Positions 1 through 32,000 of a stretch of DNA of 32,000 nucleotides are shown here, one piece after another. Both the position numbers and the translations under genes were made by a program. Numbering within the stretch: the first letter of the stretch is position 1; each line of letters begins with the position of its first letter. Below the pieces are notes generated by a model. That model worked only from the letters and a program-made list of their open reading frames with translations. It was not told where the DNA came from and did not search any database. The DNA lies in the NCBI RefSeq assembly GCF_000400465.1, contig NW_008806274.1, positions 630,244-662,243 of the forward strand, in the 5' to 3' direction. Source of the DNA: Wallemia ichthyophaga EXF-994 (taxonomy: Eukaryota; Fungi; Basidiomycota).

Positions 1-1806
1 AGGACTCAGTAAAAGCATACCTGGCTGGAAGCAGTCCTCAGGATTTTCCAACAAGGATCAAGAATGCACTTCTGCCCTATCTTTACGTTCTGGAGTCGCG
101 GAATGAAAGACAAACAGGAGTAACCGATACCGAACTCCACGAGAGATTGCTTATCAATATTATACTCGCCGTTGAAATGGATTCGGTTTTGAGCTTGATA
201 GAAGCTAGCAGACCTGATTTGAGTATTAGCGAGAGGGTGATTAAGGACGACAAACTACTGGTTGCAATATCTCTAACTCTGCTCTATACAACAACACGCA
301 CTGACATTATCGACACTATTCAAAGAGTCTTCGAATGTATGCCTGCTTGGGAAGGTGGTTTGAGTTGCAGGGTGAGAGATGTCACAGATTTCACGAATGA
401 AGGTCGTGCAGAGGTCGTACAAAGATTCAAGGCTCTCGATGTATCACAACTTGGCTCACTTCTCGATCATTTAGACATACACATTGAATCGATGGAGATC
501 TTGGCTAGATGGTCAATCAACGTAACCCTATCGAGAATCGAGTTGTGTGATTACGAACAACAACTGACATGGGCGAGGATGTTGACGCGTAGAAGCGTGG
601 GTACTTTAGGAGAAAATATCGAGAGTGGATCAGAATGGGAAGCGTTGCTAGATGACATGGTCAAGCTGTCGAACAGTGATGATGGCAGAGCGCTTGGGCT
701 GTTAGAGCGGGATATTGTCGTTAGGATTTTCTTTAGTGGTCTACTGAATTCTGCGAGTGGGTTTGCATCTTGATGGTACAAAATGTGTTTCTAACAGAAG
801 CATAGAATTTGAACTAGCCAGAGAGCTCCTGTCTTCTCCAGACTCATTGCTGTCATCTCTTGATAGAAATTTAGTGAACGAAATAGTGTTGGAAACATCC
901 CAAGAATTCTTCGATAATGCGACAGACGGAAATATCAATTACGGATACATGAGGCTATCTAAGGAAGTTTTAGAAGTAGGTGCTCAGAATGCACGTGATG
1001 TTAACTCTCGCAAAGAGTTTATACTTGCAACATCGAGACTCTGCTCATTCAACCTGGTAAACGTTCAAGGTGTTTACATAACACCGCTCGAAGTCAGACT
1101 GGAGGGTGATAAGTTGGTGTTTATTGACCAGTTGTTGAGTACACACAGGGATGCGTATCAGCATCCCGCCAGAATTATGGCGCTGGCTGAAGGTCTCGAC
1201 AGCAGTCTGAAAGACAACACCAAACGTCAAGTGGAGGTTTTAGGGAGGGTAATAGATGCTGCTATCAGATATGAAGACTATGAGCAAGCTTTTAGCGTTA
1301 CGCAGACTGACGATTACCAACAAAAGCTGACGTTCGGTGAAGACGAAGAAGACAGACGATGGGTGTCATTCTACAAACTGGGCGTGGAGATCAGATGGTC
1401 GTCAGTCTCTAACAGGCTGGATTGTTTGGCTCAAGCTATGCGGTTGTGTCCTCATCGGAGACTGCATGATGTTTTATCAAAGTGGAAAGAATTGGAAGAG
1501 AGCAAAGATAGGATAGTACCAATGGAGAAGAAGGAGGGAACGGTGAAAGATGCAAGTGGGGTACTCGCCTCGATTGTTCGCCCAACGACAATCGAAACAC
1601 AAACACGTCATTTGCTATCAGGTGGGTTGAGAAGATTGAAGAGTGTATCAGCAGGATCGCCGGGTGTTTCGTCGCAAGGGATGTCATCATCAAGCAATTC
1701 GCAGAGCCATTCTCAACCACAAGCCCATCCACACCAAACATTTGGTCTGGGGTTGGAGGAGAAGTTAACGCGCGGAGTGGGTTGGCTGATCGGGGCAGAA
1801 GAGTAG
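1..1806 (+). CDS. SEC39: Sec39-domain protein (Dsl1/NRZ tethering complex subunit), 5'-truncated by window edge; intron 757..805
   Basis: Frame 3 is open from the window start. Intron GTGGGT..CTAAC..TAG (49 nt) joins ORFs 147..773 and 757..1806 in frame (NSA-K-FELARELL). The motif SQEFFDNATDGN..G.M followed by ILATSRLCSF resembles the Sec39 domain (recognised from family knowledge). Confidence 0.75.
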
Positions 1807-1881
1807 GCGCAGCTTTGTAGAAAAGATAAAGAAATGTATTTTAAGATTGAAATCGATATCTAAGCGCCCGTTCCAACACCC

Positions 1882-2832
1882 ATGTCTGGACTTGTGCGAC
1901 AGCTACTCAGGAATAACAGGAGAAATATAAATTTACGAGAATTCCACTCGACTCGTCGGCGATGTAGCGGGTGGAGTGAAAGTAAGGAGAACAAGGATGT
2001 CATACCATCGACGAACCCACCGCAGCCACCACTCTCAACGACGCCGACGCTTGACTTTTTCAAGGACCTCGGCAAAGCAGACAGAGTGTATCATCCATTT
2101 GATACGTACAAGTTTGTGACTACGTTGCAAGCGTATGCATACTCGAGGCGTGTCTCTGAGATAATAATGGTAGCGACGAGGTGAGTGGACTGTGTATCGA
2201 ACACAAGCATTAGTAATCCACAGCACCGAACAGGACTCTGCTCATCCAACACGCCTTGATAGCCAGGAGCTCTCTAATGACGAGAGAAGATCTCGAGAAT
2301 GTGGGTGTGGATGATACGAAACTGGATAAACCGTCTCACAGCGCGTATTTAGTCAAGCTACCTCTTCCAGGCAGCGCTCACGGAGCTGCGTGTGGAGCTC
2401 AGCATCAGAGGCCGTGCAGACGCGAGTGCGTTGCGGAGCCTGACGACGGCGCTCACACGCGAGGTGGATGGTTTGGAGCAGAAGATGAAGGAGGACGTCG
2501 GCGGATTGAAGGATGACATCGAGCTCGATATGAACAACCGCAAGGACGAGACACAGTCGGATGGAAAGGCGTTCGAAATAAATGTACAGTCGCTCAACAA
2601 CAGAATCACAGTGGCCACGGGTGAGTTGAGGACTGAGGTTGAGAGGGATAAATGGGATACGACAATTCGTGTTGTCGGTGTTATTTTCTTCGAGGCTGTC
2701 TGCATCGTCGCCGCTGTGTTGCTATCGGATCCGGAAGATGTCCAGAAAAAGAAGCACAAGACTCGACTGCCTACAGCAGAGGAATTGGGGATCAGGGAGA
2801 CTGAAGATGAAGTTCAACAGCGTGTGATATGA
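1882..2832 (+). CDS. Mitochondrial DUF1640/CCDC90 (Fmp32/Put6/Put7/MCUR1-like) coiled-coil membrane protein; introns about 2181..2233 and 2301..2352
   Basis: N-terminal presequence-like R/S-rich peptide, PFDTYKFVTTLQ motif, spliced DLEN-SSYLFQAALTELR, coiled coil, DLKDDIELDMNNRK and a C-terminal TM helix (VVGVIFFEAVCIVAAVLL). Confidence 0.8.
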
Positions 2833-5210: not shown

Positions 5211-6245
5211 TTATTGTGTTTGGTCGCCCATCTCAGCCTCGCGCAACACGCCGTCCAACTTGGGATCGTTAGGCCACCACTCTGGGATACGAGCTTGGAC
5301 ATGCCAGTGAGGGTCGTTGCCGCTGTCGCCCCTAATGAACAGGCCATCTGGGGCACGCACGAGCATTTCCAATCTGAGGAGGGCGATACCGCTGATACTT
5401 CCATCGGGGTTGGGCAAGGTTCCGCAGAGTTTGCCCACCTGTTTCGGTGTTTTGAGGGATGGCAGTTGAGCGTAAATGTTAGTCATAGGTGGAGGTGTGG
5501 GAGTGTCTCCTTCATTCTGCCTCCGTTGCAGCGTGATTGGGAGAATGCGCTTTCTCACTACTCCCGTGTGCTGGGTGCGTATAGTAAGCTCCTGCCCCAC
5601 GTAGCAGCCTTTGCGGAAGTTGACGCCGTTCATGTAGTCGATGTTGGACTCGAGCGGCAGGCTCTTTTCTGGCCATAGATCGTCTATGCCCTCGGGCACA
5701 CCTAGGGAGTATCTCCTGCGGGAGTATTCGGGGTGTGTGGAGTGTGCAGAGTGTTCATCGCGTGCATCGCGTGCATCGCGTGACTCAGCAAGAATCCTTC
5801 GTCCCATTCCTGGCGCGCGAGGATCGATCATGGAAGCGATTGAAGCGATTTGGTGGTGCTCCTGCTCCTGTTCCTGCTCCTGTTCACCCACACCACCTTC
5901 ATCCTTCCAATACACACCAACACCCTCTACGCCTTCCACCTTCACTTTGGAGCGCAGCTTGTATTTGTTGCACAGCGCCACGACGCCCGCACTGACTCGG
6001 CTATCGACATCGAGATAAAAACAATCCGCGCTAGTCGGGTAGATGAAGGTATCGTAGAGCATGCGGCCTGGCGGGCTGAGGATGGCAGCGTATCGCCCGC
6101 CGTCTTGCGGAGTAGGGATGGTTTGTGTACACAGTCCGTTGAGGAATTTGGCACTATCTCTACCATGCACGCTAATAACTGAGCGTGAGTGTAGCTGTAG
6201 CTGTAGCGACTTGAATAATTGCTGTGCGATTTGCGTTGCTTTCAT
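5211..6245 (-). CDS. IBA57: Iba57/Caf17 mitochondrial [4Fe-4S] assembly factor (aminomethyltransferase-like)
   Basis: RSVISVHGRDSAKFLNGL, RRYSLGVPEG, LPLESNIDYMNGVNFRKGCYVGQELT (KGCYxGQE motif). Confidence 0.93.
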   Translation of the reverse strand: MKATQIAQQLFKSLQLQLHSRSVISVHGRDSAKFLNGLCTQTIPTPQDGGRYAAILSPPGRMLYDTFIYPTSADCFYLDVDSRVSAGVVALCNKYKLRSKVKVEGVEGVGVYWKDEGGVGEQEQEQEQEHHQIASIASMIDPRAPGMGRRILAESRDARDARDEHSAHSTHPEYSRRRYSLGVPEGIDDLWPEKSLPLESNIDYMNGVNFRKGCYVGQELTIRTQHTGVVRKRILPITLQRRQNEGDTPTPPPMTNIYAQLPSLKTPKQVGKLCGTLPNPDGSISGIALLRLEMLVRAPDGLFIRGDSGNDPHWHVQARIPEWWPNDPKLDGVLREAEMGDQTQ

Positions 6246-9150: not shown

Positions 9151-10375
9151 ATGGACACCAATAACTTCAAAGTGACCAGTTCACGCTACAAAATACACAC
9201 GGCGGAAGAATTCCCAGAGTTACGCAATGATCTTATTCTTCAAGCTGCTAGGGGTGAGTGGAGTGTAGGTATCCACACACACGCACTCACACACACCCAG
9301 GCAAGAAGACAGCCCGAGCCCCAACATGGATAATGAGGCAAGCGGGGCGTTATTTACCTGGTGAATACATGATTATATACACCACTGACACCTCTAAATC
9401 CCCTCAGAATTCAGAAAACTGCGCGAAAGCCACTCATTCTTTGAAATCTGTCAAACGCCTCAACTAGCATGCGAGATAACGATGCAGCCGATATTGCGTT
9501 ATGAGGGATTATTAGATGCGTCAATAATCTTCTCGGACATACTAGTAATTCCACAGGCATTAGGTATGGAAGTGCAGATGTTACCAGCCCAAGGGCCTCA
9601 TTTCCCCGCGCCGCTAGAGTCGCCTGAAGACATAGGGCGATTGCACAAACACGTCGACGTTGACGAGGAGCTATCGTATGTATTCCGTGCGATAACGCTG
9701 ACGCGCCACGCTCTATCTGGCCGCGTCCCACTGATCGGGTTTGCCGGTGCGCCGTGGACGCTATTTGCATATATGGTAGAAGGCGGCGGAAGTAAGACGT
9801 TTGCGCGTGCCAAGCGGTGGTTGTTCGACTGGCCCGAGGCGAGCGATGGTGTGCTCGAGCGCATAACGGCCGTGCTCATCCCCTATCTCGTCGGGCAGGT
9901 GCGTGCGGGTGCGCAGCTCCTGCAGGTGTTCGATAGCTGGGCTAGTGAGCTGTCTCACCACCACTACGTCCGCTTTGCTCTGCCCGCTCTGCGTAGAGTT
10001 AAGGAGGGCGTACATGCACAGTGTAACGCTGAAGGTATTACCACTCCCCCGCTCATCGTCTTCGCGAAGAACGTCACTCATACTGTCCTCCCACTCCTCG
10101 AAGAAATCGGCTTCGACGTCGTCGGGCTCGATTGGACTACAGCGCCAAGCGAAGTCAGCAACCGCACTAGCGCTGTACAGGGCAATTTCGATCCAAGTAT
10201 TCTATACGCCTCCGATGAGGCTATTAGGAGCGAAGTTAAAACTGTCGCTAATATGTTCAAACATAGGAACACCCCCGGTTGGATATCTAATCTTGGTCAC
10301 GGCATCACGCCAGGCGTCAAGCCAGAGAGTGTGAGAGTGTTCCTTGAGGCTGTACAGGAGTGTAGCAGGGAATGA
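9151..10375 (+). CDS. HEM12: Uroporphyrinogen decarboxylase; introns 9254..9300 and about 9361..9407
   Basis: LRNDLILQAARG|KKTARAPTWIMRQAGRYLP|EFRK, IIFSDILVIPQALG, LIGFAGAPWTL..YMVEGG, QVFDSW, NLGHGITP. Confidence 0.96.
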
Positions 10376-13472: not shown

Positions 13473-13885
13473 TCAGAAAGCAAATGAAACTGCCTTCTTC
13501 TTCTTGGGTACCTCGTTCTGATTGATAGATTTGTTATTATTACTTATATTTATATTCTTGTTCATTTTATTGAGACGCTTCTTAGTCTTGCGTAGTTTGG
13601 CACGCTGTTCGAGTTCCTGAGTCTTGTCAAGCACTGCACGACTGTGGCTCGAGTTGTGCGAGGCTGAAGACTTTTCTTTTTTATTATGTTCTTGCTTTTG
13701 TTGTGTATCTTGTGCTTTCTTTTTCTGATATGTGTGTTAGAGAGCTGTAGGTAGTATACGCCACACTAAGCACACACAGCTTTCAAGAATTTATCCGAAG
13801 ACGCTTTATCAGATTGATTGGATACCAATGCAGCCAAGTCATTCAACGCAGATGCGTCCTTGACGAATTTCTTTTTCGACACCAT
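13473..13885 (-). CDS. LOC1: Loc1-like 60S biogenesis/RNA-localisation protein; intron 13725..13777; not in the ORF track
   Basis: Spliced product is MVSKKKFVKDASALNDLAALVSNQSDKASSDKFLKA|KKKAQ..RAKLRKTKKRLNK..PKKKKAVSFAF*. The KKFV..L..L start and KKxVSFA end resemble Loc1. The protein is highly basic. Confidence 0.65.
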
Positions 13886-24239: not shown

Positions 24240-24405
24240 GTAGATCGAGCCAGATTGAGCCAGATTGATGCAGATGATGGATGTTGAGCCACAGCCACAA
24301 AACAAGATCCAGTACCTTTAAAATCAATTCAAACGATATCCGGTACCTTCCTAACTAATAGTTTTAATTAACTCGTCTTCAATTCGCCACTCTTATCATT
24401 TTTAT

Positions 24406-24415
24406 CGACGCGTCG
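24406..24415. promoter_or_regulatory. Palindrome CGACGCGTCG containing an MCB (ACGCGT) in the FAN1/YCF1 divergent promoter
   Basis: Perfect 10-bp palindrome read directly from the sequence. MCB function is inferred from ascomycete MBF biology. Confidence 0.35.
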
Positions 24416-24447: not shown

Positions 24448-27400
24448 ATGAGGGAGCTGCTATGTAATAACAGGGAGGGCTACTCCCTGTATTCAACAGA
24501 GCGCGACTTCGATAGTACAATATGCTTCGAGAATTTCAATTTGATCACGTTGCCATCGCTGCTATTCATATTAATAAGCATCAGCGATATCTGGAGGAGT
24601 TTAAAGCACCCAATAAGGACTGATACGAATTCAAGGCTTAGATTTGGTGTTAAGATTGCTGGTTATATTTCACTCAACCTTCTACTGCTTGTTCAGCTAT
24701 TCGATAGGCTCGATTATAGCATAGAAACTATAAGCCAGGCATCAGTGCAAATCTCCATTACACTAGCCTTATTCCTTTCAATCATCCATCACAACAGATT
24801 CAACAAACCTTCGAGTCTTCTCCTCTTATTTTACCCAACCATCATTCTATCCAACTTGATCAAGCTTAGAACTGTAATTATCAGCGATTACACCTCTATT
24901 AACCCTCATTTACTTATTCCTACCATCCTCATTCTCGCTTTCATCTGGCTAGTTGAGTCTAGTGGCCCTGGTTATCCTCCTTCAAATGATCCTTTGAAAG
25001 ACGCTTCCATTTACTCGTTGTGAGTATTTTTTATCCTTTAAAACTTACACTCACTATCTTCACAGATGTTCTTTCTCTTGGCTCACCCCTCTTCTCAAAT
25101 TAGGTAGACAACGCTTCATAAACGAAGAAGATCTCTGGGATTTACCCGAGAAAGATCACTCTGAGCACGTAGGCCGCAAACTACAGAAGAAGTGGCACTA
25201 TCAAACTACTAAATCATCCAACAAACCCTCTCTATGGCTCGCCTTATGTAAAGCTTACGGAAAGGACTACCTCATTTACGCGTCCTTCTTCAAAATGCTA
25301 CAAGATTCTCTAACTTTTGTTCAACCTCAATTACTCAAGAGCCTCTTGCAATTCGTCAATTCTCAACGCTCAGATAGCCCTGAACCTCTAATCAAAGGTT
25401 ACTGTTTAGCTATCGTCATGTTTGTCTCAGCCGTCTCCCAATCTACTTTCCTTCACCAATACTTCCAATTAGTTTTCATGACTGGTTTGAGAGTCAGAGC
25501 TGGTTTGGTCAATCTCCTTTACGACAAATCACTTCACTTGAACAACAACGAAAAAGCTCAAAGACCAACAGGCGACGTTGTCAATTTGATGTCCGTAGAT
25601 ACCAACAGACTGACTGATCTTTGCACTTATGGTCATATCCTCTGGTCAGGTCCTCTCCAGATTTTATTGGCCTTCATCTCTCTCTACAACCTCTTAGGAT
25701 GGCAATCATTTGTTGGTGTAGGCGTTATGATTGTTTCCATCCCAATCACTACCGTTATTGCCAGATATGTTAAGAAGCTATCGTTAGAGCAAATGAAAAT
25801 CAAAGACAAGCGTACGCATGTCATGAATGAGCTGCTCACCAACATGAAGTCAATCAAGCTTTTTGCTTGGGAGGACTCTTTCGCACAGAAGCTCTTACAT
25901 ATTCGCAACAACGAAGAGCTGCACATTCTCAGGAAGATTGGTGTTGTAAATGGCATAAGTAACTTTGTCTGGATGCTGACACCATTCCTTGTCTCATTTA
26001 CCACATTCTGGGTTTATTCTGTCACATCTAAAGAGCCGCTAACCTCAGACAAGATTTTCCCTGGTCTGGCCATCTTCCAACTCCTCTCATTTCCACTCTT
26101 TATGATCTCGAACATCATTACCTCCACCATCGAATCAGCAGTTTCGGTGGACAGGCTCAAAGACTTCCTACTCGCTGGTGAACTGGACCCTGAAGCCAAA
26201 TTACAGGTCATCCCCAATGATATTAACGTTGGTGAAGAGGTTGTTCGTATCAGCCATGGTGATTTCGCGTGGAGTGAAGATGCGCATATGCCAATATTAC
26301 AAGATATAAATCTGAGCGTTAAGATGGGTGAGTTGGTCGCCCTCGTCGGAAGAGTCGGTGATGGTAAATCATCAATGGTCCAAGCAATTCTTGGTGAAAT
26401 GCACAAATTCGAAGGTACTGTCAACGTCAAAGGCTCTATTGCATACTATGGCCAATCCCCTTGGATTATGGGTGCGACAGTAAAAGAGAACATACTTTTT
26501 GGTCACAAATTCGATCAAGACTTTTATAACCTTGTCATCGAATCTTGTGCGTTGAGAAGCGATTTAGAGTTGCTACCACAGGGTGATATGACAGAGGTTG
26601 GCGAGAAAGGTATTACTTTGTCAGGTGGTCAAAAAGCTAGAGTTGCTCTTGCTAGGGCTGTTTACTCACGTGCTGATATTTATCTCCTTGACGATCCGCT
26701 GTGCGCTGTGGATGCTCACGTTGGTAGACATCTCTGGAATAATGTCATAGGTCATAGCGGTATACTCAAGAATAAGACTAGAATAATCTCAACCAACAAT
26801 GCTGGATACTTTGATCAGGTCGATGCACTCGTCATGCTCAAGAGAGGTGTTATACTTGAGAAGGATTCCTACTTGTCGGCTATACAACGTCAAGGTCAGT
26901 TGTGGCAGCTTATGATGAAATTAGGTTGGTATCGTTAATGGAGAAGCTCTGCCTATTTCTTACACTCTTCCAGGTAAAGGTGGTGGTCATTCAACAACCA
27001 ATTCCTCCGGCACCTCGCTCAATGAACTTAACAACTCTAATGGCAAAGGCACACCACCAACTGACGGTGAAAATACACTCGTGAATGGAGAATTAGATAA
27101 ACAATCACATACTATCTTTGTCGATGAACAGAGTGAAGGTCCAAAAGTGGATGTTGTTAATGGTGTATGCACTGAAGAAACTAAGCCTAGAGAGAAGAGA
27201 ATGTCAATGAGTATGCGTCGGGCTTCTGTCGTCTCACTAGATAAAGCCAAAGCTATCGCTTTGGATGCTATGCGCAATTCATCCCAGCCTAAGGAACAAA
27301 TGGGTAGAGGCAACATCAAGACTGAAGTATATAAGAGTGAGTTGGGATTTTTTTACGAGACAATTTCTAACGATACTTAAGAATACGCCGAATCAAGCTC

Positions 27401-29383: not shown

Positions 29384-30799
29384 TCATTCTGTAGACTGTT
29401 GTATGGAAGGGAACTTAATTGGTGGTAGGTTAAGACTGAATGGATTCATCAAAGGTGGTTGTGAGGGTTCGTTATGCTTTCTTCTCTTGATTGGTAGTGG
29501 ATCAGACACTGGTAGTGATCGATACTTTTCAACATCAGGATCTTTCGAAGGTTCGCTTGTGATTTGTTGAATTTGAGAAAATTTCGGTATCGATGGCAAA
29601 TGAGGTGGTGATATTGCTTGATAGTGCATAGGGGAAAGGTTTGACTGATACTGTTGAAATTGATAGTATTTTTGCTGTTTAGCTTCGTGTTGATTGAGGT
29701 CACTCAATTGAGATTGAGCTTGTTGTAACGATATGGTAATAGAATTCAAGTGACCTTGATATGCTTGCTTTTGTTGTTCCAAATTCGAACAATGCTGCTC
29801 TAATTGCAATTTGCTCAAATTTGGTGGTTGTGGTGATTTCATTGTCTTGTACGTACCACCAAACTCAGGTTCGTCTGATGAAGCGGAAGATGTCGATTGT
29901 CGTTTGAGTGGATTGGGATGAATGCTAAGTTCTTTAGTTGATGATGCTGGCACACCTCCATCTTGTATACCCATTAAAGTTACGGCTGCTTCGTGCTCAT
30001 TTTGAGGGATTGAGTGTTGATTTTGGGGTGTAAGGTTGTTGAGTGGTGAATTAACTTGAGGGAGAGGAACAGATGAAGTTGGAACAGATGAAGGCATTCT
30101 CTTTCTTCTCTTTATGATAGTCTTTTTCATATGTACGGGCCTGGGAGCGTTATGAAGTTTCTGATAAAGACCACAGGCGTTACATTGAGGTTTGCCATCA
30201 TCAGTTCTTCTCCAAAGAGGGGTAGTAGTGGTGTTGCAATTTGCACACTGTAAGCCACCTAACTGTTGTGCGTGGTGTTGTTGCTGTTCGGGATTTAGAG
30301 TGTTGGGTGGGGAGGGTGCGGGAGCGGGCGCAGGAACGGGAGGTTGCGGGACCGAAGAACTGGATTGAGACATCTCTTGAGATTTTTGTAGTTGATGCCT
30401 TTGAGCGTTGTTATATGCGGGACAACCAGTGCAAGAGCTAGTACCACCTGTACCGTTGCAATAACCGCCACCGGGACAACTGCCAGAGGTCTTCAGAACT
30501 TCGGATTGATTTATACAAGTAGATTGTAATGTGGTTGGCCTTGGAGTGTTTCTATTCTTTTCGTACAATCCTTATCAGATATCGTTATCAGCGGATAGTA
30601 ATTGAGATAAGAGATTCTACTCACCACACGCATTACATAAATTCTGATCATTAAGGCCACGCCTCCATAGGGGAGTATTCCAAGTACCGCAATTTGAGCA
30701 TGTGGTTTTGATCGCTGCATCACTTGTACTGCTTTGTGATATTGCAGCGCTTGTACTTGGTACTGGTTGCTCAATTCTCTCTATCTGTGCCGTGGACAT
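29384..30799 (-). CDS. sreA: Iron-responsive GATA repressor, SreA/Urbs1/Fep1/Sfu1 type (ZnF1 - Cys-rich region - ZnF2); intron 30571..30624
   Basis: ZnF1 [19 protein letters not shown]|LY, Cys-rich [24 protein letters not shown], ZnF2 [40 protein letters not shown]. Confidence 0.93.
30572..30580 (-). promoter_or_regulatory. ATCTGATAA, SreA-type consensus site inside the sreA intron, overlapping the 3' splice site
   Basis: Plus-strand TTATCAGAT is the reverse complement of ATCTGATAA. The ATCWGATAA consensus is established for Aspergillus SreA-type factors. Function here is inferred. Confidence 0.5.
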
Positions 30800-30996
30800 G
30801 AATTATTGTGGTGGTAAGGAACAACGACGTCTCGACGAATGAGATGCGAGATATTATAAAGATTTACAATTATTTTCTATTTTATTGCTTTGATCTTAAG
30901 CGATTAGACTATTTCACTTTCATAGCCTCATCCGGGTTTGCTTAACTGTTTTCATTCAATGTGAAGTTTTTCACCACCTAGATTGTGTGGATCATC

Positions 30997-31005
30997 ATCA
31001 GATAA
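30997..31005 (+). promoter_or_regulatory. ATCAGATAA, SreA-type consensus site in the sreA/ABZ1 divergent promoter
   Basis: Exact match to ATCWGATAA, 68 bp before the ABZ1 ATG and about 200 bp before the sreA ATG. Confidence 0.45.
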
Positions 31006-31073
31006 ATAAACGATTTCATCCGTTGTGGAGGCTGGTGAGATGGGTATTTTAACACTGTTAACACACAACAACC

Positions 31074-32000
31074 ATGACGATCAAGTTGTTGATTGTAGAT
31101 CATCACGATTCTTATACGAATAATATACTCAGTCTGTTAGCTGGGATTGAAGGTATATACACATTGGTCATAAATCATGATAAATTGTTTGATTACAAGT
31201 CAATCGATTCATTCGACGGCATAATTATCAGCCCAGGTCCAGGAAGATCTGATTATGATAGCGATTTCGGGATAAGCGCGAGTATAATCAAATATGCTTT
31301 AACCATAAATAAACCTTTATTAGGTATTTGCTTGGGTCATCAAGGCATAGCAACCACTCTATCACCTCAGTCCCGGTTGATCCCTGTGAATAGCTTGAAA
31401 CACGGCCATATCACTCCTATATCATTAAGCGAAAGCCCTTTGTTTAGAAATATTCAATCCATTATTAATGTTGTCACTTACAACTCACTCACTATCAATC
31501 CACCCCTTTTCAACCATTTCAACATAATTGCGACTGAATTACATGACAGGAGCTCTATCATGGCTTTAGAACACTCCTACGCTCCTCTTTACGGCTTACA
31601 ATTCCATCCTGAATCCATTCAATCTCAACATGGTTCACTTATCATGAACAATTTCTTAGATATTTGCCATAAATTCAAGAATGTCACTCTAGAAATACCA
31701 ACCCATCTCATAGAAAGCTCTTCTATTGCAATTCCATCTCAATCAACGCCCTGCGTCCAGGAATCTGCATTTAAAGTGACGCAGCGACCACTTGATCTAC
31801 CAGATGATCCTCAACAAGTCTTCAATTATAGCGTCAGACAATTAACAGGACTAGGAAGTGTCTGGCTAGACTCTGCGAGACTCATTCAAGGTGTTGAATC
31901 CATGTCTTATCTCGCAAAACCTGCTATTGCAATATCATTCAAGCTATCAGATCATTCTTTGAGCATAAAAACGGAGCATGAGGGATTTCAAGTAACTATA
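31074..32000 (+). CDS. ABZ1: Aminodeoxychorismate (PABA) synthase, GATase domain and linker; 3'-truncated by window edge; not in the ORF track
   Basis: MTIKLLIVDHHDSYTNNI, IISPGPG, GICLGHQG, YNSL, GLQFHPES. The frame continues past the GATase domain to the window end, as expected for the fused fungal enzyme. Confidence 0.85.
   Translation, partial: MTIKLLIVDHHDSYTNNILSLLAGIEGIYTLVINHDKLFDYKSIDSFDGIIISPGPGRSDYDSDFGISASIIKYALTINKPLLGICLGHQGIATTLSPQSRLIPVNSLKHGHITPISLSESPLFRNIQSIINVVTYNSLTINPPLFNHFNIIATELHDRSSIMALEHSYAPLYGLQFHPESIQSQHGSLIMNNFLDICHKFKNVTLEIPTHLIESSSIAIPSQSTPCVQESAFKVTQRPLDLPDDPQQVFNYSVRQLTGLGSVWLDSARLIQGVESMSYLAKPAIAISFKLSDHSLSIKTEHEGFQVTI

Follow-up and report, generated by a model that had tools for sequence, protein, structure and literature searches.

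Conserved GATA motifs inside the first intron of an iron-type GATA repressor gene in Wallemia

The window analyzed here is a 32,000-nucleotide (nt) stretch of the genome of Wallemia ichthyophaga EXF-994, a salt-loving (halophilic) basidiomycete (contig NW_008806274.1, positions 630,244 to 662,243). On its minus strand the window carries a two-exon gene for a GATA-type zinc finger protein, and the intron between the two exons, which splits the first finger, is the subject of this report. The gene is found in the order PABA-synthase-like gene, GATA gene, ABC transporter gene, FAN1-like gene, and this order is common to the four Wallemia lineages compared below. The spliced product is a protein of 453 amino acids that matches the annotated W. 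ichthyophaga protein E3P92_00226 from end to end with 100% identity, so that our gene model agrees with the public annotation. The coordinates of all features are collected in Table 1.

Two matches to the GATA finger family (Pfam PF00320, E = 1.3e-25) were detected in the spliced product. Both fingers are of the CX2CX17CX2C type (C34-C37-C55-C58 and C167-C170-C188-C191), and the canonical form of the first is restored when splicing joins CNACG to LY. Between the fingers lies a four-cysteine block, C90-PGGGY-C96-NGTGGTSS-C105-TG-C108, and the same CX5CX8CX2C arrangement is present in every Wallemia and Agaricomycete orthologue retrieved. This cysteine block defines the SreA/Fep1/Urbs1 class and is an iron or iron-sulfur (Fe-S) ligand region. 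The closest named relatives in a protein search were annotated as siderophore transcription factor SreA, sreP, and siderophore regulation protein (E ∼1e-41 to 1e-44); some matches carried the generic label "nitrogen GATA activator." By every sequence feature checked the gene appears to be a clear member of the SreA/Fep1/Urbs1-type iron-responsive repressors, because it combines two GATA fingers and the CX5CX8CX2C block with siderophore regulators as its relatives. On the same grounds we accept the identification as an iron GATA repressor that was proposed in an earlier note on this DNA.

The intron contains three GATAA sites. One of them, AGATAAG, is inverted; the other two, TGATAAC and TGATAAG, are in direct orientation and are separated from each other by 11–13 base pairs (bp). 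Their positions and strands are exactly those reported in the earlier note. Site 2 coincides with the probable branch point (ATAAC or CTGAT, 14–17 nt ahead of the AG), and at site 3 the acceptor is formed by the AG flanking the extended motif ATCTGATAA. The unspliced frame reads ...CNACGE*, confirming the earlier observation that translation of an unspliced message would stop right after zinc finger 1. GATAA occurs 85 times in the window, counting both strands, which corresponds to 0.14 expected occurrences per 54 nt. The probability of at least three GATAA in 54 nt is 4e-4 at this window-wide density and 1.5e-3 at the density of control introns (6 GATAA in 1482 nt, 32 introns). With 3 occurrences where 0.14–0.22 are expected, the intron is above background by either measure. 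The AAG acceptor had also been called unusual, but it is ordinary in Wallemia, where 7 of 32 neighboring control introns end in AAG. One intron of the ABC transporter gene (27337..27381 of the window) keeps its AAG acceptor in three of four lineages.

The earlier note had proposed an alignment of orthologous introns, and this was carried out with W. ichthyophaga, W. hederae, W. mellicola, and a Wallemia lineage assembled from SRR25399871. The orthologous intron interrupts the same codon in the same phase in all four, with lengths of 54, 54, 54, and 53 nt. The orthologous proteins are only 62–77% identical, yet CTTATCT, the 10-mer CTGATAACGA, and TGATAAG|G are found in all four introns. In W. 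ichthyophaga 25 of the 48 bases that follow the donor hexamer fall in blocks of at least 6 nt common to the four lineages, and every one of these blocks holds a WGATAA core. The orthologous introns contain 3, 3, 4, and 3 GATAA, compared with 6 in the 1482 nt of control introns; the additional copy is a fourth TTATC in W. hederae.

Eight orthologous introns of the adjacent ABC transporter and FAN1-like genes, taken from the same four genomes, served as controls for this comparison. Not a single base of these introns falls in a four-way block, and no 5-mer is common to the four lineages (n = 8). All that can be recognized in them is a donor, an acceptor, and a YTRAC branch point that drifts. Four-way 7-mers are few in the three intergenic regions nearby, and no other non-coding stretch of the neighborhood is as conserved as the intron of the iron repressor gene. 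The GATA sites are thus selectively conserved: their cores are invariant in four Wallemia lineages, and the control introns have diverged. Because the GATAA blocks are invariant while the eight control introns share nothing four ways, the comparison argues that the motifs are functional and constrained by selection beyond the needs of splicing.

The branch point deserves separate consideration, since the earlier note had cautioned that splicing might drive part of the enrichment. That caveat holds insofar as site 2 overlaps the probable branch point. Nevertheless, the branch point of this intron is frozen as the rare form ATAAC together with its flanks, and the resulting conserved 10-mer exceeds the drifting signals of the control introns, which shift among CTAAC, TTAAC, CTGAC, and others. 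Introns in the window have YTRAC 10–14 nt before the AG; ATAAC in the iron repressor intron is 14 nt before the AG, and an ATAAC branch point was also seen in one control intron. The sequence CTGATAAC was considered as a branch-point consensus for the genus and was rejected, as it occurs once in the window and the window and control introns use YTRAC, mostly CTAAC.

No more Wallemia-like copies were found in JGI metagenomes, either by protein or by a DNA pattern of exon 1 and the donor that is independent of intron content, and the comparison therefore rests on four lineages. Polymorphism within species is too low to be informative, as W. ichthyophaga alleles are 99–100% identical and no difference was seen in the intron among four W. 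mellicola strains. The SRR25399871 lineage, which may represent a species not yet described or sequenced, has ∼80% DNA identity to W. ichthyophaga across 4.6 kb and is closer to it than is W. hederae.

The acceptor site is an exact match to ATCWGATAA, a motif with 4 matches in the window against 0.86 expected, a number reached in 0 of 100 shuffles. The earlier note had counted two further matches, at 13806 and 16725 (both ATCTGATAA), which do lie in ordinary coding sequence, but it had missed the fourth, at 30997..31005 in the 5′ intergenic region of the GATA gene. The match at the acceptor sits in the regulator's own intron and not upstream of an iron-regulated gene. Its description as an extended SreA consensus is exact for W. 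ichthyophaga but does not carry over to the other three lineages, in which the acceptor site reads AATTGATAA or ATATGATAA and the TGATAAG core alone is invariant. Likewise, the TTATC core of the upstream site is kept in the four lineages and the ATC extension is absent from the other three. The heptamer TGATAAG is found 12 times in the window (5.2 expected; 0 of 100 shuffles reach 12), mostly in coding sequence or at stop codons. It is not a general ending of Wallemia introns, because among these 12 matches only the iron repressor intron's own site ends a recognizable intron.

Outside the genus, the first finger is interrupted at the identical CNACG|LY position and in the same phase in Lentinus, Coprinopsis, and Rickenella. 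The introns are ∼435, ∼619, and ∼209 nt in length and contain 1, 1, and 0 GATAA, respectively. The Mucor orthologue has no intron, and that of Pseudozyma has an intron in finger 2 only, without GATAA. Deep conservation of the GATAA cluster is ruled out by these comparisons. An 11-mer common to the Lentinus and Coprinopsis introns was not significant (15 of 300 shuffles).

The retention of the intron GATAA cores in four lineages, while neighboring introns diverged, is suggestive of control of the gene from within, by the regulator itself or by a related GATA factor. We tentatively favor an intragenic GATA operator that is read on the DNA level by the gene's own product. The cluster of three WGATAA motifs in the first intron would form an operator ∼0.2 kb downstream of the promoter, and the iron-loaded product would bind both this cluster and the one conserved GATA site of the 5′ intergenic region. 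The bound product would repress its own transcription, and this negative autoregulation would cap the level of the repressor when iron is plentiful. We infer this direction of the feedback in iron-replete cells because the family is established as one of repressors. Site 2 overlies the probable branch point and site 3 the 3′ splice site, so that the same bases would serve two roles. WGATAA is the published core of Fep1, Urbs1, and SreA sites, for which the extended form ATCWGATAA has also been defined (PMC2610380). As reader of the sites, the gene's own product would require the fewest assumptions, because the full ATCWGATAA is present in W. ichthyophaga both in the intron and upstream. Moreover, GATAAG recurs locally as a conserved non-coding DNA motif, since TGATAAG in the promoter region of the neighboring Ycf1/abc3-like ABC transporter gene is conserved four ways and the TTATC core upstream of the GATA gene is conserved as well. 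The earlier note had also placed a negative-feedback module in this intron; the conservation bears out its premise of functional, GATA-like motifs, whereas neither the specific mechanism nor the arguments drawn from ATCWGATAA and from the AAG acceptor are supported.

Several points weigh against control of the gene by its own product through this intron. There is no GATAA enrichment in the Agaricomycete introns at the same position (Lentinus, Coprinopsis, and Rickenella), so that the feature is limited to Wallemia, and among the four Wallemia lineages the full ATCWGATAA is confined to W. ichthyophaga, in intron and promoter alike. Four lineages is a small number, and the SRR25399871 lineage is ∼80% identical in DNA to the window. 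WGATAA and GATAAG are equally the core of nitrogen-type GATA factors. No SreA-type autoregulation or intronic operator was found in the searched literature, and the known control of Aspergillus sreA is by HapX. Finally, site 1 is the exact reverse complement of site 3, so that part of the conservation can be put down to an RNA stem.

Such a stem is the basis of a reading that we regard as rather unlikely, in which the intron acts as an RNA element. The CUUAUC of its 5′ half would pair with the GAUAAG of its 3′ end, looping out the branch point and burying the AAG acceptor in a stem of 6–8 bp, and in combination with the non-consensus branch point (ATAAC) and the AAG acceptor splicing would thereby become tunable. 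Retention would truncate the protein inside finger 1 and direct the message to nonsense-mediated decay (NMD). The stem is part of the minimum-free-energy fold of three of the four orthologues and of the centroid of the fourth, and the RNAalifold consensus contains it (7 pairs, −5.45 kcal/mol). Its 6-bp core is invariant. In W. mellicola the arms extend to a perfect 8 bp (ACCTTATC/GATAAGGT), one exon base of which differs from the other species. The length of the intron is held at 53–54 nt, and an in-frame stop is present within the retained intron of every orthologue, a finding that also excludes retention as the source of an in-frame isoform. However, none of the 7 predicted pairs is changed on both sides (with an invariant core this comparison has little power), the z-scores of the folds against shuffled sequences are weak (−1.99, −1.11, −0.32, and −1.34), and W. 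hederae has lost the outer pair (G/G). No Rfam match was found at E ≤ 1 in 30300..31100, and the frequency of AAG acceptors in Wallemia makes nothing special of this one. The stem also leaves unexplained the invariant 10-mer CTGATAACGA and the T that flanks each arm. This invariant T, after CTTATC and before GATAAG, fits WGATAA and not a hairpin, where it would give a T/T mismatch. Site 1 is not a splice signal, and the fourth TTATC gained by W. hederae looks like the site turnover of binding-site clusters. We therefore favor DNA sites over the RNA stem, because they cover the three blocks, the invariant Ts, the fourth W. hederae site, and the non-splicing site 1.

The same DNA sites might be read by a different GATA factor, such as a nitrogen regulator of the AreA/Gat1/Dal80 type, which would tie expression of the iron repressor to another signal. 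Nitrogen GATA factors prefer GATAAG as their core, and the conserved cores WGATAAG and WGATAAC lack the ATC extension characteristic of SreA-type sites in Asco- and Basidiomycota. The spacing of the GATAA pairs fits the use by Dal80-type repressors of pairs 15–35 bp apart. We nevertheless consider this alternative unlikely, as nothing specific points to another GATA factor and the full ATCWGATAA in the W. ichthyophaga intron and promoter fits SreA-type recognition. The conserved TGATAAG upstream of the abc3-class ABC transporter gene also speaks for an iron-type factor, as Schizosaccharomyces pombe abc3+ is reportedly repressed by Fep1. Much the least probable explanation is that nothing beyond splicing is involved and that the GATAA are by-products of the branch point (CTRAY/ATAAC), the AAG acceptor, and chance. 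Site 2 does overlap the probable branch point and site 3 the acceptor, and ATAAC-type branch points and AAG acceptors both occur in control introns. Splicing signals of the 5-nt class that vary are, however, all that the eight controls keep, whereas the iron repressor intron has invariant blocks of 7, 10, and 7 nt, one of them the non-splicing site 1. Furthermore, the probability of at least three GATAA in 54 nt is ∼1e-3 per intron, and the condition holds in four lineages. A combination of splicing and chance thus appears very unlikely.

A more elaborate version of self-control is a dual-coded iron switch, in which sites for the gene's own repressor over the branch point and 3′ splice site gate co-transcriptional splicing. 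The repressor would occupy the template or the nascent transcript, possibly in competition with the CUUAUC/GAUAAG stem, and would toggle the output between the full two-finger repressor and a truncated, NMD-targeted transcript. This we think improbable. If true, it would couple iron sensing directly to the splicing of the sensor's own message.

Known GATA systems provide points of reference for the intragenic operator. Like the genes for SreA, Fep1, Urbs1, Sfu1, and Sre1, the Wallemia gene codes for two GATA fingers flanking a CX5CX8CX2C block, and the motifs in its intron match the WGATAA core. Like SreA-type operators, one intron site and one promoter site of W. ichthyophaga match the full ATCWGATAA (PMC2610380). 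Known SreA-type operators, however, are located in the promoters of iron-uptake genes, whereas the Wallemia cluster is in the repressor's own intron, over splice signals, and its extended consensus is not conserved across the Wallemia lineages compared. Fungal iron homeostasis is usually described as a cross-repression loop of the SreA-HapX type. A conserved intronic cluster would, if the proposed function is true, add a negative autoregulatory arm to this loop, and would show in compact form how the same bases can hold both transcription-factor sites and splice signals. Direct self-control of a GATA iron repressor was not found described in the searched literature, nor was anything on iron regulation in Wallemia.

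GATA factor genes under autoregulation include that for GATA-2, with an intronic enhancer, yeast DAL80 and GAT1, and Aspergillus areA. The Wallemia gene resembles them in having multiple GATA motifs, including an inverted pair, in the factor's own gene and conserved across species. Palindromic GATA motifs are also present in the vertebrate GATA-1 gene (PMC2610380). The autoregulated genes, however, code for activators or nitrogen repressors and have their sites in promoters or in enhancers within long introns, whereas the Wallemia gene codes for a presumptive iron-sensing repressor and has its sites in a 54-nt intron, where the branch point and the 3′ splice site fall on the same bases. There is also a resemblance to regulated fungal introns that act through retention and NMD: the intron is short, its branch point departs from the consensus, its acceptor is AAG, a stem may cover the 3′ splice site, and retention brings in premature stops. 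Unlike structured fungal introns, it has no covariation and a weak thermodynamic signal, and its conserved bases exceed the needs of the stem. The cluster appears to be a regulatory element conserved throughout the genus in a key regulator, and it is restricted to this one genus.

Table 1. Features of the iron-type GATA repressor gene and its neighborhood (window positions)
Feature	Position	Strand	Remarks
Exon 1	30625..30799	-	ATG at 30799; codes for amino acids 1–58 and the first base of Gly59; zinc finger 1 core C34..C58 = 30626..30700
Intron, 54 nt, phase 1, GTGAGT...AAG	30571..30624	-	Splits CNACG|LY; sequence GTGAGTAGAATCTCTTATCTCAATTACTATCCGCTGATAACGATATCTGATAAG
GATA site 1, AGATAAG (gene sense CTTATCT)	30605..30611	+	AGATAA at 30605..30610; invariant in four lineages; outside all splice signals
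GATA site 2, CTGATAACGA	30582..30591	-	Invariant 10-mer; CTGATAA at 30585..30591; overlaps probable branch point
GATA site 3, TGATAAG	30571..30577	-	Last AG is the 3′ splice site; invariant in four lineages; extended ATCTGATAA at 30572..30580
Exon 2 (stop included)	29384..30570	-	Rest of finger 1, Cys-rich block, zinc finger 2, Q-rich coiled-coil-like tail
Cys-rich block C90-X5-C96-X8-C105-X2-C108	30422..30478	-	Between the fingers, exon 2
Zinc finger 2, C167..C191	30173..30247	-	Exon 2
Full extended consensus ATCAGATAA	30997..31005	+	5′ intergenic region; 198 bp upstream of the GATA gene ATG; 69 bp upstream of the PABA-synthase-like ATG (31074)
TATA-like TATAATA	30852..30858	-	One of only two four-way 7-mers in the 5′ intergenic region
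TCTTATC (TGATAAGA on the other strand)	24392..24398	-	Four-way conserved; upstream of the Ycf1/abc3-like ABC transporter gene (ATG 24448)
GACGCGT, MluI-box-like	∼24407..24413		Conserved; upstream of the ABC transporter ATG (24448)

The upstream GATA site lies in the stretch that separates the GATA gene from the PABA-synthase-like gene, and could serve either of them. A conserved CCAC(A/T)ACGGAT block (31015..31035) is found 25–33 nt from its TTATC core, near the divergent PABA-synthase-like ATG. If TATAATA acts as a TATA element, the intron would lie roughly 200–260 bp downstream of the transcription start. The intergenic region measures 274 bp in W. ichthyophaga (30800..31073) and 456–473 bp in the three relatives (9289..9761 of locus L010, from the SRR25399871 lineage; 9543..10000 of L011; and 9545..10000 of L012). 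In W. ichthyophaga the conserved distal block is ∼185 bp closer to the GATA gene.

The conserved TGATAAG in front of the ABC transporter gene raises the possibility that this neighbor may belong to the same iron regulon. S. pombe Abc3 is a vacuolar transporter that has been studied in fep1-delta cells. The window also holds a CAF17/IBA57-like Fe-S assembly gene (5211..6245, minus strand) and a gene for uroporphyrinogen decarboxylase, an enzyme of heme synthesis (9482..10375, plus strand).

The finger-1 introns of the Agaricomycetes are unusually long (1838..2272 of the Lentinus locus L007, 1808..2426 of the Coprinopsis locus L008, and 842..1050 of the Rickenella locus L013). Each of the three contains one CACGTG E-box 60–110 nt from the donor, where ∼0.05–0.15 would be expected per intron, and 0–1 further copies are present elsewhere in each locus. 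The CACGTG is possibly a conserved bHLH site. Finger 2 is also split at the homologous CNACG|LY position in the Agaricomycetes and Pseudozyma (∼2897..3279 of L007, ∼2982..3238 of L008, ∼1660..1743 of L013, and ∼2186..2290 of L014). Wallemia has no finger-2 intron, which was lost or never gained there, while the finger-1 intron was kept. The long Agaricomycete introns with CACGTG hint at a possible regulatory hot spot at this intron in the iron regulators of basidiomycetes at large.

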